In this document: piece after piece, positions 3,175-46,545 of the stretch
How the letters are laid out: every line of letters starts with the position of its first letter
How positions within the stretch are numbered: position 1 is the stretch's first letter
Source: Bispira polyomma
Lineage: Eukaryota
Direction: 5' to 3'
Assembly (NCBI GenBank): GCA_965649765.1
Contig: OZ287755.1
Span: 62,558,001-62,622,000 of the forward strand
DNA length: 64,000 bases
Translations under genes and position numbers: made by a program
Notes under the pieces: generated by a model
Databases searched by the model: none
The model's input: only the letters and a program-made list of their open reading frames with translations
What the model was told of the DNA's origin: nothing

Positions 3175-4057
3175 GCCTGAGCCTAACCACAAGAGCCAGA
3201 TGAGAAGTCAACCCAGAGGTCTTGCAGTAGCAGAAAATTTAAAAGGTCCTTTTCAGGACCACCCAAAATTTAAAAGGTCCTTTTCAGGACCACCCAAAAA
3301 TTTCAAAAACAATATCTGAGCTGTTTGTTACACCCCCACCCATTACCAGTAACAATCACTAAATGTAATACCAAGGGCCCCTACACACATACAACTTAAC
3401 CAATTCCCCCAAAAAAAACATTGAAAATGTAAAAAGCCCTACACACACAGACATAATAAGAACCCTTGGTGCCAGTTGTTTTGGGCAAAAAAGGGTTAAA
3501 ATCAAAAAAAGTTGTGTGACCACTCATTTGGAAGATTTTTATCTCACGAGCTTATTTATTTTGTCTACAAAAAAAACTTTTCATTGCATCAACACAAAAA
3601 TTAAAGTTTAAGAAAAAGATTCTCAATTCCTTTTCCTCAAAATTATTTCTGTTTTTTTCCCCCCAAAAAAACACACACAATGCACTACAGCCTGGGGAGT
3701 TTGTATCTCAATTTGGTACTTATTGGGTTATTTGGGACAGACTTTGTACTGTCTTCCCTTCTAAAACAATTTCTTGTAATTATTGTCTGTCATTATTTAT
3801 CAGAAACATTTACTATGGGGATGGGGACTTGATATCTCAATTCGGTACTTATAGGGACAGATTTGACAGACTTTTTTTTTTCCTAATAATATCTCATATT
3901 TGGTATCCCTTGTCATTTAACAAAATCTTTTCAATGGGGGTAGGGATTTTCATTCTCAATTAGATAGTTACTTGGGCAATTTTGGGAGGTTTTGATTCTT
4001 TCTTTTTTTCCCCCCTATTCTCAAACAAAATTATCTAAACAGGGACAAGTTGGACAT

Positions 4058-5571
4058 TCACAAACAATTATTGGGGGGGTGATAAGTAAGTTTTGTCTGT
4101 ATGAGTGTTATTTGTTTTGCGTGGCTAAATAATCTGTCTGGCGGTGTTGGTCGTGGAGTGGTAGAGGTAGACAGTGCTGGTGAAGCGGGCTGCAGGTGTA
4201 GCTGATGCTGTGACACGGGCTCGGACTCTGGCTGAGGAGTTGGCGAGACCATCAGCTGCTGTTTGTTGTCAATCAAGACGACCTGTGACTGCTGATTGTC
4301 CACTGGTAAAGACGTTACCAATATTCCTGGGGCGCTGGGACTAACTTTCTCATAATCAAAGTTCTGGGGGAGTTCGCTGTTGTACTTCCTCAGAAAGCTT
4401 GAAATCGTTGACGTGTTGTGTGCTGACTCCTCAAACAAGGACGCATTAGAAGGTGGGTTTGAGTACTGCTTACTAGGAGAAATGCTCGCCATCTTCAACT
4501 TAGTAGCAATCCCTGAAAGTTCTTCCAAGCTAAAGTAAGTTGGTGACTTGACACTGGACTACCCAGCAGCCGAAGACTCTGTAGCTGTACCCACCACAAT
4601 GAACTGTGGTGGGTGCTGAGACTGCTGGGATGGAAAGTTCTGTTGTTGAAATGTGGTAGCAGGCTTCTGCTGAGACGACCCAGCAGCCGAAGACTCTGTA
4701 GCTGTACCCACCACAACGAACTGTGGTGGGTGCTGAGACTGCTGGGAATGAAAGTTCTGCGGTTGAAACGCGGGCTTCTGTGCAGCAGCCGAAGACTCTG
4801 TAGCTCTATCCATCACCACAAGCTCAGGATGCTGAGACTGCTGCACGTACTGCTGGGGGATGTAGCTCAATCCAGGCGCTTGCGGCAGGGCAGGTCTGGC
4901 GAAGGCACTCCTCACGGGTTGACACCTTGCTGGATCTGGCTGAGGCAGGAAAAGGTGCTGTCTCGGAACTTCTGAAACTTGCCCTCATCTAACTTCTCTG
5001 CCTCGGCTGCTAGGTAAGTGAAAAAGGCGCTGCGGTTGGTCACAGGCTTCTGGGGACTTCTCTGCTCTCCAACCAAGCTGATCATCAGTGTCCTGATCTG
5101 TGTGAGGTGCTCTCCAAGCATCAGGTTGGCATCGATTGAGCTGAGTCGAGACGGGGAACTTCTCTGGAGGCTCCTGAGACTGGTCTCTGTGATGCTGTCG
5201 CCCTCTCCTCCGATGCTGGAACATCTGGACACATCGTGGCTTCCCTGGCAGGGTGGGGACACTCCCTAGGTAGACGTAGCACTGGATTTGAAGCCTGACG
5301 ACTTAACATGTCTGACGATGTGAGATCCAAGAAAGGAGAAGTGCGCGATCAGCCAGTTCTCTCGCTCTGTAAAATCGGGTGTGGCCTGTTCAGACTTCTT
5401 AATCATCAACTTGCCGAAGCGGGTCCTCTGCGACTGAAACCAAGTCCTAACCTCATTGGTTTTCAAACCACGGGTAGCTGCGAAATCGGACCACAACTTC
5501 TCCTTCAGTGTTCTGTCCTTGAACTGTTCGTGGCGCTTGTTGAAAAGCACCTCGTCTCTGACAAAATCCAT
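4058..5571 (-). pseudogene. Harbinger accessory MADF/Myb-SANT-like DNA-binding protein pseudogene with Gln/Ser-rich tail
   Basis: DFVRDEVLFNKRHEQFKDRTLKEKLW...EVRTWFQSQRTRFGK matches a MADF trihelix pattern. ORF pieces 5266-5571, 4912-5262, 4559-4915 and 4058-4528 are joined by stops (5266, 4559) and one frameshift (~4913). A BESS-like segment reads AFFTYLAAEAEKLDEGKFQKFR. Confidence 0.85.
4561..4860. repeat. 120-bp tandem repeat (~2.5 copies) inside the Harbinger ORF2
   Basis: CCAGCAGCCGAAGACTCTGTAGCTGTACCCACCACA recurs at ~4563 and ~4680, with a partial copy at ~4783. It encodes the QQSQHPPQFVVVGTATESSAA repeats. Confidence 0.85.
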
Positions 5572-7899
5572 GTCAAATAAGTTCGACCGGATTGGCAGCC
5601 CCGCCTGTCATATTGAAAAAGAGGCGGATCCCAATAGGACAGAACGGGCCAGCAATAGGATCGAACGTATTGATGGTCCCGACTTTGAGGTCCGGGACCA
5701 AAAGTCGGGACCACTTTTAAAATTTCTAACTTTTTTGATATTCTTCCAGACCTTCCTGACCACCCCGTTTTTGGTCCCCGACCTTCCCGTACGTGTCCCG
5801 GACCTCAAAGTCGGGAAGGTCAGGGACCAAATCCTGAATGTGGAACCCCCACTTAAATTTTCCCTGGTAATTAATTTCACTGTATAAGCCCAACAGGGAA
5901 AAAGTAAATTTCACTTACAAGATATAAAGTAGGATAGATATAAAAGAGGACAAAAGAGAAAAGTGTTTTAATAAAATATATTCAAAACATTTAGTAGATT
6001 TAAAACAAATTCATAAAATCCACTGATCGGAGAATAAATATTGAGATAATAAACATGTAAAGTAACCATTATAACAGATAGGTTGTAGTATAGAAAAGAA
6101 TCCCTCAATTGTAACTAAGGAAAATTTAGATGAGTTTATTATAGGATTATACTGCCTTCATCTTTAAAATGGGAATCAAAAGGTTACAATAAATTTTGAT
6201 ATGAAAGCTTTACATTTTAGACACAATTATTGTGATCCCATTCCAATGATGCATATGGTGGGTTTTTAATACCACTTTTTTGGTATTTGGTTACAGATAG
6301 TTGGAGTGACTAAAACACACACCACAGACTGCTTCCGGCATTCAATAACGGTCTAATATATAATTCATTAAACAGGGAACCATTTTTTATTGTGAGTAAC
6401 TGAACGAAAATAAAATTATGTTTTTTGGGGTGTTGACTGATTATTAACCAAGGTTCAGGGAGTAAAAAATGCTGCCAGTTACTAGTTAACAAAGTACAGA
6501 ATTTGAATTTATCTGGGTTTTATATCTCTTTCAATAGCTTTGGTCATATTGCGATAGACAGGTTAAGTTGTGGGGGAAACCAATGCTGAAGTATTGTAAA
6601 CCACCGTCCTGACAAACTTTCTCACATGAACAAGTAATCTTTGGGATTCGATCCCCAGAGGTGAGAGGCCAGTGATTTTAAAATCGACACTTATGATTAC
6701 TAGGCCACCGCGGCCCTCGTCAAGAAGTCTATTTTTTGCAAAAAATGAAGCATCAATAGAATATAAACAGACATTCCACTTCCCAGAGGGTATGTATTAA
6801 GTGAAGACATAAATCATTACAAATACCGTATAAGTAGGAAATTTTTATTTTTAGCTTCAATAATAGTGAAAAGTGAATGTTCACTCGAAAAATTCCTATA
6901 TCTAAATATTCTTTTATGTAAAAAAAAAACAGGCAATAGTTTTAAACATAAATTGAATTTACTTTTGTAGAAATTACCAGATGTATATAGCAACATTTTG
7001 ATTACAGCTAAAATTCCAGTATTACTGTAAATTTTGGATTGAGAAAAACTGGTAGCCAGATGGTTAAGGAAAACATTAGGCTTTTCAGGGAGTGTGTGTG
7101 TGTGTGTGTGTTAATAATACCAGAATACACCAAGAAGGGGGCTTAATCACTGCTAGATTTGTCACCCACATATTGTCCTGGTTAATTGTGACCCAAAAAA
7201 TAGATAAAAAAAAGACAGATAACTTAGTTGAACAGAGAGACACACAGGGAAAGACCATATGCCAGCACTGATGTTATTTACACACAAAAAATTGTTTGTT
7301 TTGTTTTTTTAAACTCAAACTTAAGTCTCAAAGTCTCCTGTGTTTGACATAAATAAATACAACAGAACAACCTCTATTATCCAAACTATTAACCTACTAA
7401 AAGGTACTAGAGTGGACGTTAAATATTCAAATTAAAAATTTACAATTTTAGTATGGTATGCATATCTGAGTGGAGTTTTAGTCATTTTGTGAATACTAGA
7501 GGTTTGAGATGTTATGTCCCCGTTCACACATTGGTGGTATGGTAAGCAGGTACCAAAAGGGATAATTGTAACTTGTCCTTCTACCTGTTATGTCCGCGGT
7601 TCTATCTAGGGAATATATATATAGCCCCTCATATGGAGTGAAACCTGTCCAGATCAGTTTTACAGATGGAAAGAGATGGAAGCAGACAATTACTGGCACA
7701 GATGTGTTAAAGTAGTGATACAGAAATAGTTGAAAACAGGCAAAACATACGGTAACTGGGACAAAAGACTAATAGTAGAAACCAGTGGAAGGACACCTTG
7801 GGGGAAGGTGGATGTTTGACCAGACTAAAAATTCAGCTAGGAACGACCAACTGTAGAAGGTTTGGGAAGCAAGCTGAAGTAAATAAACGTGATTTTTTT

Positions 7900-11458: not shown

Positions 11459-11685
11459 TCACCCAGACGGTCCTTTTGACTGTAAGTGTGAGAGATCAAG
11501 GCAAGCCCTACAGCATGTGTTCCGCGGACCTCCTAGCTCTCTGCAGAATTGTGGGTAATCGCGGGTGATAATAGAGCAGGAGTTGACTTTCTCCACGTAA
11601 TCCGTGCTGCCATCTGGTTTGTAGTGAGTCACCAGGTAGTGGTTTGTGGCTGACAGGGTGTCACGACAGTTACACCGACGCATAT
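11459..11685 (-). CDS. Exon E23: gamma module, probable terminal exon ending QSKGPSG-stop
   Basis: tttctgttag|AT. Encodes CNCRDTLSA...SCSIITRDYPQFCRELGGPRNTCCRAC. TGA at 11459-11461; no further module exon seen downstream. Confidence 0.88.
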
Positions 11686-16030: not shown

Positions 16031-16168
16031 CGACTCCTGCACAGGAAGCACAGCACTCTTTCTTCACCTCTTGACAGTGACACGGATCTCTGGCCACAAA
16101 GTCCTGACAGGTGATTCCTGGTCCTTTAGACTGCATGGTTCCTAGTTCTCTGTCTACACAGGCGCCGG
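16031..16168 (-). CDS. Exon E19: beta module, paralog of E6 (absent from the ORF track)
   Basis: gtattacag|CC ... GTC G|gtaagt. Encodes GACVDRELGTMQSKGPGITCQDFVARDPCHCQEVKKECCASCAGV. Confidence 0.9.
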
Positions 16169-16737: not shown

Positions 16738-16930
16738 TTGGTTTCAGGAAAAAGCTCAAAACTTATCTTTCTAATCTTACCTACCCACCTTAGTTTCCCT
16801 CCTGTACACCCCTACATCTTTCCTTACGACCTTGCTATGCCCATGGACTTTATGATTGGATCACTGATTCTGCTGTTGCACTTTAGAAGATGCCTAGTAT
16901 CATTAAAACGTTTTAAAAATGTATAATAAT
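16738..16930 (+). mobile_element. L2 3' tail, antisense to the host gene, abutting the E18 donor
   Basis: Same tail sequence as 24812-25030 but on the + strand. Confidence 0.8.
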
Positions 16931-16936
16931 ACAAAC

Positions 16937-17149
16937 CTCCTGATCCTCTGTTATCTTCCTCTTCCACCACCACCACTGTCTCGCGGTCTCCTTTACTACC
17001 TCCATAGTCGTAGTCGTAATACTCTACCAAGCTAGGGCCTCCTGGGCCTTTAGTGTCCACCACTTCTCCATACACCACCTCCTCCTCCCCACCGCCAGGG
17101 TTGATCACACCAATCACCTCGTCCTCTGTCCCACTCACCTCTTCAGGAC
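16937..17149 (-). CDS. Exon E18: Glu/Val/Gly-rich acidic linker with YYDYDY
   Basis: cctaaag|GT CCT ... GGA G|gtttgt. 213 nt, phase 1-1. Confidence 0.82.
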
Positions 17150-21078: not shown

Positions 21079-21220
21079 TTGACGGATCCTTGGATTTCCT
21101 TTGCCAGGTTTTCCATAGCAGCATCCAGTACATCTGACTTCATTTCCATCACTGGACCTTTGAACTCGAAGAGGTCAGAGCCGTCCTGACCACCCACTGC
21201 TTGTTTAACGATATTGTGTC
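21079..21220 (-). CDS. Exon E16: linker containing FKGP
   Basis: tttcatag|GA ... GTC AA|gtaagt. The phase-2 end matches E17. Confidence 0.82.
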
Positions 21221-42079: not shown

Positions 42080-42247
42080 CGACTCTGGCACAAGATGCAC
42101 AGCATTCTTCTGCTACCTCTTGGCAATTACAGGGATCCCTTGCTATGAACTGCTGACATGTAATGCCCGAACCTTTGGACTGCATGCGACCCAACTCACG
42201 GTCCACACAGGCGTTCACTTGGTCTTGCTGACCGGCAGCAGCAGAGG
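42080..42247 (-). CDS. Exon E6: beta module
   Basis: atcacag|CC ... GTC G|gtatgt. Encodes CVDRELGRMQSKGSGITCQQFIARDPCNCQEVAEECCASC. Confidence 0.9.
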
Positions 42248-42427
42248 CTGTGATAAAAAAGGGGGAAAATAGTTCTGGAGTGGAATCATTGTTGTACTTT
42301 ATTGTATTATATATTTCATAAAACTCTTGCTCTCCTAACATGTTCACATGATAGAGGTTCTATTAGGTTCTGTAAGTGGTCATCTGAGCCACTATGTATT
42401 TGCCTGTTACTAATCTGTTATGTGATC

Positions 42428-42735
42428 CCCTGTGGTCTAGTGGTTAAGGTGTTGGTCTGATGATCAGAAGGTACCTGGTTCTATCCCCGGTCCTGGCTGA
42501 TAGTCTCATTTGGTAGGATAAAATCTTTAGGCAAGATGTGAACACAAGTTTGCCTAGTGGCTCGGATGACCACTTAAAATGGCGGTCCACTGTCACTGAG
42601 TAATATCTCCAGTGGCAGATTAAAAATCCTTAGGGATGTTAATAAATGGTCAACCGTGGCGCCCATAGTGGCTGCCCATGAGGAAGCGCTTTAGAGTAAT
42701 ATTTATTAAGTGCTATATAGATGTTGTATAATAAT
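42428..42735 (+). mobile_element. tRNA-derived SINE, second family (copies ~15170-15420 minus, ~49265-49570 plus)
   Basis: Head TGTGGTCTAGTGGTTAAGG...GGTTCTATCCCC; shared body GGCAAGATGTGAACAC...GGATGACCACTTAAAATGGC. Confidence 0.72.
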
Positions 42736-43389
42736 GATATAAAAAATAATAATCACCCCAAGCTGGGATCAAACCCAGGTCTTGTGCATTGTTAAGCTAG
42801 TGTATTACCCACATGGCTACAGTGGCAGGTTTTTTCATTCTTTGCAATGTGTGGTATCATTATACTAAAAGGCTGGACTAACACAATATCCTAATACTGA
42901 AGCAGAGCTAATCCAAAACTTTTGTAGCTAAATTATTTTTGGACCAAGAATCAGCTCATGAGTGAAGAGGTCTTTTATATAAATACCAGAGACACAGAGC
43001 TTCTAACCTACCTTTGGCATTGGTAAATGTTAATTTTAAATGGAAGTGGCTGTTGAACTATTAGTGATTCATTTCTTTGTACTGTATGATAAATAAAACA
43101 TTGGAGTGTTAATTGGGGCTTGTTATTCACCTTGATCCCACATTTGGATTTACCAATGTACATTCTTTAGTCCCCTGGGATGGGAATGAAACAAAAGCCA
43201 GTCAAATTTTTTTCTATGAGGAAAATACAATAGAAGCTCTGTTATCCGAACATCTTAAAAGAGCAATATTTTGTTTGGATAATAGAATGTTCCTAAAATA
43301 GAAGTGACATTTTACAAAAATCAGTGATAAAATGAAAGTTCGGGAGAGTGAAAATGTGTTCATAATATCTAATATGTTCCTGTACTTAC

Positions 43390-43786
43390 GTCCTTTGTCC
43401 ATCTGGCTGGTTCTCTGTCTACTTTCAGCAGTTTGCCCTTTGGTCCACAATCTCTCCTCTCTCCTCCGTGTTCCAGCAACGTCTGCTGGCCCCTTAGTTT
43501 GCAGTTCATCCGTTCTCCTCCTGACTTCATCCGTTGGTCCCTTGGTCCTCACCACTTGGTCCACTCTCCTACGTGTTTCTGCTGTTCCTGGTCCTTTCAA
43601 TTGGACTTCGTCCACTTGTCCTTGGCTTGCATCTGTAGGCCCCTTTGGCTGTACAACAGTCTCCCTTTGGCGGCTCTCATCTACCGGACCTTTGGCCTGG
43701 GTTGCATCACCTCTTCCTGTGCTTGCACTTGGTCCCTTGTCATCCGGATTTGTTCCCACATTCACCTGTCCACCGGATACTCCCAC
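43390..43786 (-). CDS. Exon E5: KGP-repeat linker
   Basis: ttacag|GTG ... GGA C|gtaagt. All 8 Lys are followed by Gly, spaced about 15-18 aa apart. Confidence 0.88.
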
Positions 43787-44227
43787 CTGTAATATATACA
43801 GGATATAGGTGTACACTGTATATGTGAATAGAATACTCTACAAGTGTGCTTTTGAGGTTAGTAAGAAAAAAAAATCAATACATCCAGGCGTTTGGTTGCA
43901 ATCACAGCAGAAGAAATCGTCTCTCCACCTCTGGCTTCTTACTCCAAAAAATGGGCTGGTTCAAAATCATTTAAAGTTGCACCACCTGTTAAATGGAAAA
44001 GTTTCCCTATTATAGTCTTTGCACGGAGGCAAGAATTGCATGCATTAAGGAAAAAGCTCAAAATCATATATATCAGCTGGCCTATCCACCTTAACATTTA
44101 TCTGCTGGTCACCACTAAACTCTGATCGTAAACCTAAAACGTGAAGGGGAAATTGGCCTAACAAAGTTCTACTTGAAGGGTTTGATTCTATATTGTACTT
44201 TAGTAGACTGTAGTAGATTTAACACAC

Positions 44228-44417
44228 CTCCACCTGAGGCCCAGGAGCTGGTCCTTTAGCATCTACATCTACATCCACAATGACTGCTTCCTCATGTCCC
44301 CGAGTTTCGCCAGTTTCTCCTTTGTTGTTGTCTGTTATTTCTTCTACTGTCACATCCTGGCAGGTGTGGCAGCATAGGTTTCCTGACCCTCCATAAGTGG
44401 CACACAAGCCCTGATAT
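44228..44417 (-). CDS. Exon E4: C-half of alpha module 2 plus acidic linker
   Basis: tttcag|A TAT. Encodes YQGLCATYGGSGNLCCHTC...DAKGPAPGPQVE. Phase-0 donor gtgtgt (alternative gtggag would end the exon at 44234). Confidence 0.85.
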
Positions 44418-44859
44418 CTGAAAGAAATCAAGACACAACTCAATCAAAACCCTTAAGATTTTTACAAACCGCCGACTACACGACACTACACTACACCACA
44501 CTACATGGGACGCCACTGCAAGACAACTATATTCACACCAACCACCACACCACACTACACATCTATATAAAAGTGTGTCTGTACCTTCCCGCCCCTTCCC
44601 CCAAAATACTTTTACAACATATTATATATAGTGAAACCTAACGACACAACGTTTTTTAGAGATTGCAGTGTTGTGCTGTGCAGGGTAGTGTAGTGTCTTG
44701 CTGGGAGCAGTCTGAATAATCATTATATATATTTCCTTATTTGTATTTTATTGTAGTGACGTGTCATCAGCAGTCTGTACGGTCCTGTAGTATCAGATAT
44801 CTCTCTCACTGAAAAATGTACTTGGCCCGAATATTTGTCCAAATAATCCCAAGCAGCTC

Positions 44860-46454: not shown

Positions 46455-46545
46455 CTGCCAGAGATCTGACTACATGATGTCAATCTGAGGCCATTGGCAA
46501 AAGCTATTGCATTCGCTTCACTCAGCTGATCCAGACAGTTTGGTC
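46455..46545 (-). CDS. Exon E3: N-half of alpha module 2 (absent from the ORF track)
   Basis: tttcag|GA CCA ... GGC AG|gtgagt. Encodes PNCLDQLSEANAIAFANGLRLTSCSQISG. The phase-2 end matches E4. Confidence 0.85.

Follow-up and report, generated by a model that had tools for sequence, protein, structure and literature searches.

A cysteine-free spacer exon with regularly spaced Lys-Gly-Pro sites in a multi-module protein of Bispira polyomma: candidate sites of lysine modification

The spacer exon and its gene

The window, by which we mean the whole 64,000-nucleotide stretch analysed (G000:C8:62,558,001-62,622,000, from an assembly of 1.035 Gb in 75 contigs), was AT-rich animal DNA without any N. 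Its minus strand carries a gene that we modelled with about 22 exons between positions 61334 and 11462, several of their borders being set by splice sites and phase only. Counted exon by exon, the product has about 1,466 residues, 60 of them lysines; similarity searches and fold models were likewise run exon by exon. The exon at the centre of this analysis, E5, is 397 nt long and gave a stop-free translation of 132 codons plus one base (Table 1). It is preceded by a pyrimidine tract with an AG acceptor, is followed by a GTAAGT donor and is single-copy in its own genome. The last codon is split as C/CC: the CC at 42247-42246 of E6 completes a Pro.

Table 1. Positions in the window of the spacer exons, their neighbours and the Lys-Gly-Pro sites
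Feature	Position	Strand	Basis
Exon E2: Gly-rich, 3' end ...QQTK + G	55985..56177	-	inferred
Exon E3: opens GA CCA, completing the K-G-P begun by E2; first half of a Cys module	46455..46545	-	splice-site reading only
Exon E4: second half of a Cys module and acidic start of the spacer; NNKGE, DAKGP	44228..44417	-	spliced to E5 in organism B
Exon E5: 132-residue Cys-free spacer, ~7.5 degenerate 16-residue repeats headed K-G-P	43390..43786	-	translation, splice sites, spliced contig of organism B
KGP 1 (DDKGP)	43730..43738	-	translation
KGP 2 (QAKGP)	43685..43693	-	translation
KGP 3 (QPKGP)	43637..43645	-	translation
KGP 4 (QLKGP)	43589..43597	-	translation
KGP 5 (RTKGP)	43535..43543	-	translation
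KGP 6 (QTKGP)	43487..43495	-	translation
KGQ 7 (WTKGQ); KGP in organism B via T>G at 43434	43433..43441	-	translation and organism-B contig
KG plus first base of a Pro codon (MDKG), completed by E6	43390..43396	-	splice junction
Exon E6: end of the spacer and six/eight-Cys module; QSKGS	42080..42247	-	spliced to E5 in organism B
KGP in E16 (EFKGP)	21153..21161	-	translation
KGP in acidic linker exon E18 (DTKGP)	17043..17051	-	translation
KGP in E19 (MQSKGP), module loop between Cys1 and Cys2	16119..16127	-	translation
KGP in the C-terminal tail (LQSKGPSG-stop)	11468..11476	-	translation

Transcript support comes from one 1666-nt contig of organism B, a related species (run X4, record 25); the DNA runs X1-X3 come from the window's own species and matched E5 and its flanks exactly. 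The contig covers window positions 44225-44420, 43390-43783 and 42080-42245, skipping both introns. It is a spliced transcript, and because it joins E4, E5 and E6 without their introns these are real exons, expressed in organism B. The contig fixes the E4/E5/E6 junctions to within 2-3 bases. At the joint of E4 and E5 the letters GTG fit both sides, and the donor GAG/GTGTGT places the junction at 44228/43786. E5 is a constitutive coding exon; its 397 nt do not divide by three, and skipping it would break the reading frame.

At the 5' end of the model lies E1 (60801-61334, minus strand), in which Gly-rich decapeptide repeats of the G-G-G-G-S-V-T-R-T-N type precede the first Cys module. Use of the acceptor at 56178-56177 would put E1 in phase with E2. 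A search for a signal peptide upstream of E1 found none, the sole candidate (at 62640) being a TTA microsatellite. The protein is built from about 16 six-cysteine modules, the majority of which have a phase 1-1 exon each. Secreted proteins typically have disulfide modules of this kind and exons of this phase, and because it is built in this way the protein is most likely secreted.

Thirty modules aligned from this gene and its paralogs share an invariant C-x-D...C...C...CC-x-x-C pattern, which we take to resemble that of PLAC. Leaving PLAC aside, no Pfam family scored above its cut-off on the 30 modules, and there was no ShK (PF01549) hit at E values up to 10. Faint HMM matches to PLAC (PF08686) occurred in two of the 30, the better with an E value of 0.0047, given without bit score or cut-off. 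An AlphaFold model of one module, built from the 30-copy alignment, reached a pLDDT of 90.6. Foldseek found no match for it in the PDB, a shape search of the atlas returned nothing usable and a PDB sequence search for the module found nothing. Exhaustive structural alignment gave Z≥2 in three of 48,161 chains, all of them ShK-like (2mcr, 2k72 and 6dri), with Z values of just 2.1-2.5 and an rmsd of 2.1-2.3 A over 33-36 residues. A feature search of the Atlas also rated the module weakly ShK-like. We call the modules ShKT/PLAC-like in this weak sense, as a likeness of the modelled fold and cysteine pattern rather than family membership.

Several other elements were observed in the window. The introns on both sides of E5 contain very high-copy interspersed repeats (42400-42760 and 43205-43378), which are present in organism B as well; their summed contig depth reached about 4e5, and that of the exon about 20. 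A tRNA-like GGGATCGAACCC box in the loose-end consensus makes them probable SINEs of tRNA origin. On the plus strand, positions 3271-3317 matched the histone 3' UTR stem-loop (RF00032, 40.9 bits, E 1.3e-8), which implies a replication-dependent histone gene just upstream. An open frame at 5269-5607 (minus strand) looked MADF/transposase-like by eye and is followed by a Gln/Ser-rich repeat ORF at 4061-4984; these are unrelated to KGP.

Lys-Gly-Pro sites inside and outside E5

The eight lysines of E5 stand at residues 17, 32, 48, 64, 82, 98, 116 and 131, and each of them is followed by Gly. The tripeptide is KGP at six sites and KGQ at one, and at the last it is KGP read across the splice to E6. 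The first-pass annotation of this DNA had listed the eight contexts, and retranslation agrees with it exactly; it had also given a spacing of 15-18 residues, and we measured intervals of 15, 16, 16, 18, 16, 18 and 15. Two splice junctions had been said to rebuild KGP. At E5/E6 the spliced contig of organism B supports this, and at E2/E3 the sequence reads AAG G/GA CCA (55985/46545) and gives KGP, on splice-site reading only. In the whole Cys-free spacer, which spans about 188 residues between the final Cys in E4 and the first one in E6, all ten lysines precede Gly. Among 200,000 shuffles of the exon, none had KG at all eight lysines or at least six KGP, and a spacing as even as that of E5 arose in about 1e-5 of random placements; both tests overstate independence, the eight sites being copies within one diverged tandem repeat.

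That repeat becomes apparent when the exon is stacked on its lysines. The 16-residue unit reads K-G-P, T/A/V, D/A, E, S/T, an R-R/Q-R cluster, x, D/E, E/Q, V/L, Q, T. Outside the motif the units share a mean pairwise identity of 31%, while K and G are 100% conserved and Pro is nearly invariant. The alignment shows that the eight sites descend from one duplicated unit and are not independent events, so that the periodicity of E5 is due to tandem duplication of a 16-residue unit rather than to separately placed sites. The duplication is old, because TRF found no DNA tandem repeat in E5 (the repeat is visible at the protein level only), because identity between units is so low, and because third codon positions are scrambled even within the motif (AAG/AAA for Lys, GGA/GGT/GGG for Gly, CCA/CCG/CCT for Pro). 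The scrambled synonymous positions also argue against recent copying or conversion among units. Lys-Gly has therefore been held at the protein level, and the motif kept by selection, while the remaining residues of the unit drifted.

It might be supposed that a positive charge is all that is maintained at these positions. E5 contains 16 arginines, 13 of them encoded by AGA or AGG and so a single transition away from Lys. Nevertheless the two residues are fully segregated, with no Arg at the motif position and no Lys anywhere else (Fisher 1.4e-6). Charge conservation alone therefore does not account for the pattern.

Outside E5 the motif recurs. The recurrences of KG or KGP that had been noted in E4, E6, E10, E16, E18 and E19 and at the C-terminus (QSKGPSG-stop) were all found to be present. 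Ten of the 52 lysines outside E5 precede Gly, which is weakly above expectation (p 0.08), whereas KGP occurs six times against 0.21 expected, a 28-fold excess (p 8e-8). Because KGP is strongly enriched there and KG only weakly, the conserved unit is K-G-P rather than K-G. Often it is Q-x-K-G-P: Gln occupies position -2 in seven of 13 KGP sites overall (p 1e-6) and in three of the six outside E5. In E5 itself Gln is at -2 in four of the eight units, and Lys is in every one. The Q-x-KGP sites of the tail, the E19 module loop and the E2/E3 junction are all non-homologous to E5. T-K-G-P is found at four sites, namely two in E5, one in E18 and one over the E2/E3 splice.

The paralogous arrays on the same chromosome differ in this respect from the gene, their 15 matched modules having 85 lysines with four KG and no KGP. 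A scan of the arrays at C8:33.96-34.0 Mb and 46.0-46.06 Mb found no KGP linker exon. These regions (L008-L019) hold further Lys-rich arrays of the ShKT/PLAC-like module, in the same three subtypes. Across the genome, a pattern of three KGP codon triplets 45-54 nt apart had 187 matches against 279 in the reversed control, nearly all of them satellites, and was therefore uninformative about the motif. Two further repeats may be mentioned here. The first, at G000:C6:57.970-57.982 Mb (L036:3986-6210 and L037:5358-5882, both plus strand), is a 24/30-nt tandem repeat of more than 2 kb with three frames open. Read in one frame it would give many copies of Q-Q-Y-Q-K-G-P-P-Q-P, with the lysines almost always in Q-K-G-P, and in another a Thr-rich mucin-like repeat. 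The second, a 15/16-nt minisatellite at G000:C7:60,014,544-60,014,858 (L038:4400-4950, plus strand), reads K-G-P-V-V in its 15-nt form. It is unlikely to be coding because the 16-nt units break the frame.

Conservation of KG in orthologs had been proposed as a check on the motif, and organism B allowed this in part. Its E5 differs by 30 letters and six inserted letters over 394 nt (about 92% DNA identity). Among the 16 of these 30 differences that are listed (inserted letters excluded), seven change a residue, seven are silent and none falls on a motif K or G; with seven replacements the motif residues would be spared by chance with a probability of about 0.28, so the power of this comparison is low. 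As far as the listed differences go, KG is kept in organism B, but one relative this close gives the check little force. Q118 is P in organism B, where the sole KGQ of E5 is KGP. For E6 six differences are listed, five of them silent, and QSKGS reads the same in organism B.

More distant relatives of E5 were sought in several ways. A word search found none, and HMMER against 1.84 billion representative proteins gave three hits (E 5e-5 to 4e-4) with no credible relative among them. We judged these hits spurious, two being proteins with Ala/Leu-rich repeats of about 34 residues and the third a 3000-residue charged repeat protein. Atlas look-alikes scored about 0.80, which is noise level; Pfam searches with E5 and nine other exons gave nothing meaningful. 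Word searches of the literature on a named KGP repeat, or on tube proteins of polychaetes that contain ShK modules, turned up nothing of relevance.

Possible roles of the lysine array

A single-sequence AlphaFold model of E5 was largely unstructured (pLDDT 58, pTM 0.19), with helices at residues 69-82, 86-97 and 100-116 that break at K82-G83-P84, K98-G99-P100 and K116. We take E5 as modelled to be a disordered, charge-mixed, flexible spacer between folded modules. The spacing of Gly is irregular, there is no run of Gly-X-Y triplets and Pfam Collagen gave no match. Ser, Thr and Pro together make up 30 of the 132 residues and are not dominant as in a mucin-like PTS domain, Arg, Gly, Val, Gln and Asp being equally common. 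In place of the paired lysines of elastin-type KP/KA domains, which lie in Ala- or Pro-rich stretches alternating with hydrophobic domains, E5 has lone lysines among charged residues, at intervals of 15-18 residues, and in place of the GQDPVK hexapeptide of cementoin there is a unit of 16 residues with another consensus.

Two short sequences in the linkers deserve mention in their own right. Unit 1 of E5 contains an R-G-D tripeptide (43706-43714, minus strand) at the place taken by R-R-R or R-Q-R in later units; it may be an adhesion motif of the integrin type, or it may have arisen by chance. The acidic Cys-free linker encoded by E18 (16930-17149, minus strand) contains GSKGD as well as DTKGP, and a Y-Y-D-Y-D-Y cluster that is a possible tyrosine-sulfation site.

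What, then, has kept the lysines in place? The Lys side chain itself is probably the selected feature, because it is never replaced by Arg, which is one transition away, and because KGP recurs in unrelated Cys-free segments. Of the possible uses of the spacer lysines, the likeliest is as a target for a lysine-directed enzyme of the secretory pathway or the matrix. Among the specific proposals the leading one, which we advance tentatively, by analogy and as less likely than not, is that they are candidate sites for hydroxylation by PLOD, possibly then glycosylated or cross-linked. PLOD, the collagen-type lysyl hydroxylase of the ER, whose sequon is X-Lys-Gly on an unfolded chain, would hydroxylate the spacer lysines; sugars could be attached to the resulting hydroxylysine, or lysyl oxidase could use it for cross-links. 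In that way the array would place a reactive Lys at intervals of about 16 residues along the flexible spacer that links the folded modules.

The first-pass annotation had taken X-Lys-Gly to be the PLOD consensus. Published work agrees and extends it to non-collagen proteins: PLOD1-3 hydroxylate X-K-G in non-collagen secreted proteins, and a PLOD1-3 triple knockout abolished antibody hydroxylysine (PMC11551027). The hot spot of antibody hydroxylation is S-T-K-G-P of IgG CH1, and other non-collagen cases of X-K-G include W-K-G in somatostatin-28, rtPA, CD4 and conotoxin De13a (PMC11551027). Most antibody X-K-G sites are nevertheless not hydroxylated, and those that react do so at low levels (PMC11551027); the sequon is therefore permissive rather than predictive. 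The genome has lysyl oxidase genes, one at C5:27.87 Mb and a tandem cluster of at least six at C11:13.56-13.78 Mb.

The main rival dispenses with lysine chemistry altogether. The spacer could be a chain of short charged helices, Gly ending one and Pro starting the next with Lys at the helix C-terminus, so that the K-G-P cap would set the stiffness and reach of the spacer. Such a structural hinge is possible, if on the unlikely side. The three helices of the E5 model do break at successive KGPs and the units, rich in Arg, Asp and Glu, have a helix-compatible pattern; the model is a poor one, however, and units 1-3 are non-helical in it. A hinge would account for the Gly and the Pro but would leave unexplained why Arg is excluded, since a positive charge at a helix C-terminus would tolerate Arg. 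Moreover, the tail at the C-terminus and one module loop also contain KGP, and neither has a helix array.

A further rival keeps the lysines reactive but assigns them to another enzyme. In a transglutaminase array the Gln at -2 and the Lys of Q-x-K-G-P would act as acyl donor and acceptor, forming isopeptide bonds to neighbours or to the matrix. Transglutaminases prefer Gln in Q-x-P-hydrophobic contexts, and the sites described here do not match this preference. The excess of Gln at -2 speaks for such an array and the genome has about seven transglutaminase loci, including a cluster of about five at C4:81.22-81.43 Mb, an expanded family like that of the lysyl oxidases; Gln is missing at -2, however, in half of the E5 units. 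That Gln/Lys pairs can serve as transglutaminase substrates, as the first-pass annotation had held, has a precedent in the cementoin of trappin-2/pre-elafin, a Cys-free GQDPVK array with P-V-K-G next to a disulfide-rich domain, for which covalent anchorage of the protein in the matrix has been proposed (PMC3110255). In cementoin, though, the P-V-K-G lysines are not the reactive ones and there is no consensus around those that are (PMC3110255). We regard a transglutaminase array as rather unlikely.

It is more doubtful still that K-G-P is a recognition or processing motif, either docking to a receptor, lectin or matrix component or accompanying RRR/RQR convertase sites that would free peptides of about 16 residues. 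Linear motifs typically combine a short invariant core with flanks that vary, as K-G-P does, units 2 and 4-7 have RRR or RQR, and unit 1 has the RGD described above. The basic cluster is missing from units 1 and 3, however, there is no amidation or dibasic pattern of the kind seen in peptide precursors, and the exon is flanked by structural modules in what is a very large protein. Equally doubtful is a neutral relic, in which K-G-P would have no role of its own and would simply be the part of a duplicated unit that decays most slowly. The eight sites do share one ancestral unit, but other columns have drifted to 31% identity on average with K and G at 100%, and the motif has scrambled third codon positions and no tandem repeat that TRF could detect in the DNA. 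In addition, segments of the protein that are not homologous to E5 show a 28-fold excess of KGP, the paralogs have none, and the KGQ unit is KGP in organism B.

Returning to hydroxylation of the lysines by PLOD, a wider picture can be drawn, which as a whole we consider improbable, though less so than a transglutaminase array by itself. The protein could be a non-collagen matrix protein with a 16-residue 'ruler' of collagen-type sequons, cured into a network by PLOD followed by a glycosyltransferase or lysyl oxidase, or by transglutaminase, for instance as part of the tube, the mucus or the cuticle of an annelid that lives in a tube. That the protein polymerises into a network is conjectural. 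Should the lysines prove to be enzyme targets, E5 would be a clear example from nature of collagen-type lysine chemistry applied to a scaffold other than collagen, at a constant spacing of 16 residues. It would then belong to a lineage-specific matrix polymer that uses collagen cross-link chemistry without a triple helix, which would bear on how invertebrate tubes, mucus and cuticles are cured and would offer a simple design for cross-linkable protein materials. X-K-G(-P), unwanted as a hydroxylation site in biopharmaceuticals, would turn out to serve a purpose in nature. Were the motif only a hinge, E5 would be an ordinary lineage-specific repeat linker.

Comparison with known systems

In its modules the protein is like the ShKT (SXC) and PLAC proteins (nematode ShKT mucins, MMP23, the tails of ADAMTS and papilin), which also consist of small six-Cys arrays with low-complexity linkers. 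It is unlike ShKT in that its cysteine pattern ends in CC-x2-C where that of ShKT ends in C-x3-C-x2-C, and in having a long insert between Cys1 and Cys2.

For the spacer the nearest comparisons lie elsewhere. Involucrin, SPRR and SVS/semenogelin, which PMC3110255 names, are precursors of the cornified envelope or of clots and have Gln/Lys repeats. Like them, E5 consists of short tandem repeats that would present cross-linkable residues periodically on a flexible chain; unlike E5, they are Gln-rich with many lysines in varied contexts, whereas here there is one Lys per unit in a fixed tripeptide. Cementoin shares with E5 a Cys-free tandem repeat with one Lys-Gly and often one Gln per unit, beside disulfide-rich modules. 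Its unit, however, has six residues against 16 here, its array 38 against about 130, there is no sequence similarity, and its partner is a WAP domain in vertebrates where here the neighbours are ShKT/PLAC-like.

Unlike collagen, E5 has no Gly-X-Y helix, and its sites lie 16 residues apart, not three. The spacer is like PLOD substrates in that every one of its lysines stands in X-K-G on a Cys-free and probably unfolded chain, and the T-K-G-P context at four sites in this protein is that of the hydroxylation hot spot of IgG CH1.
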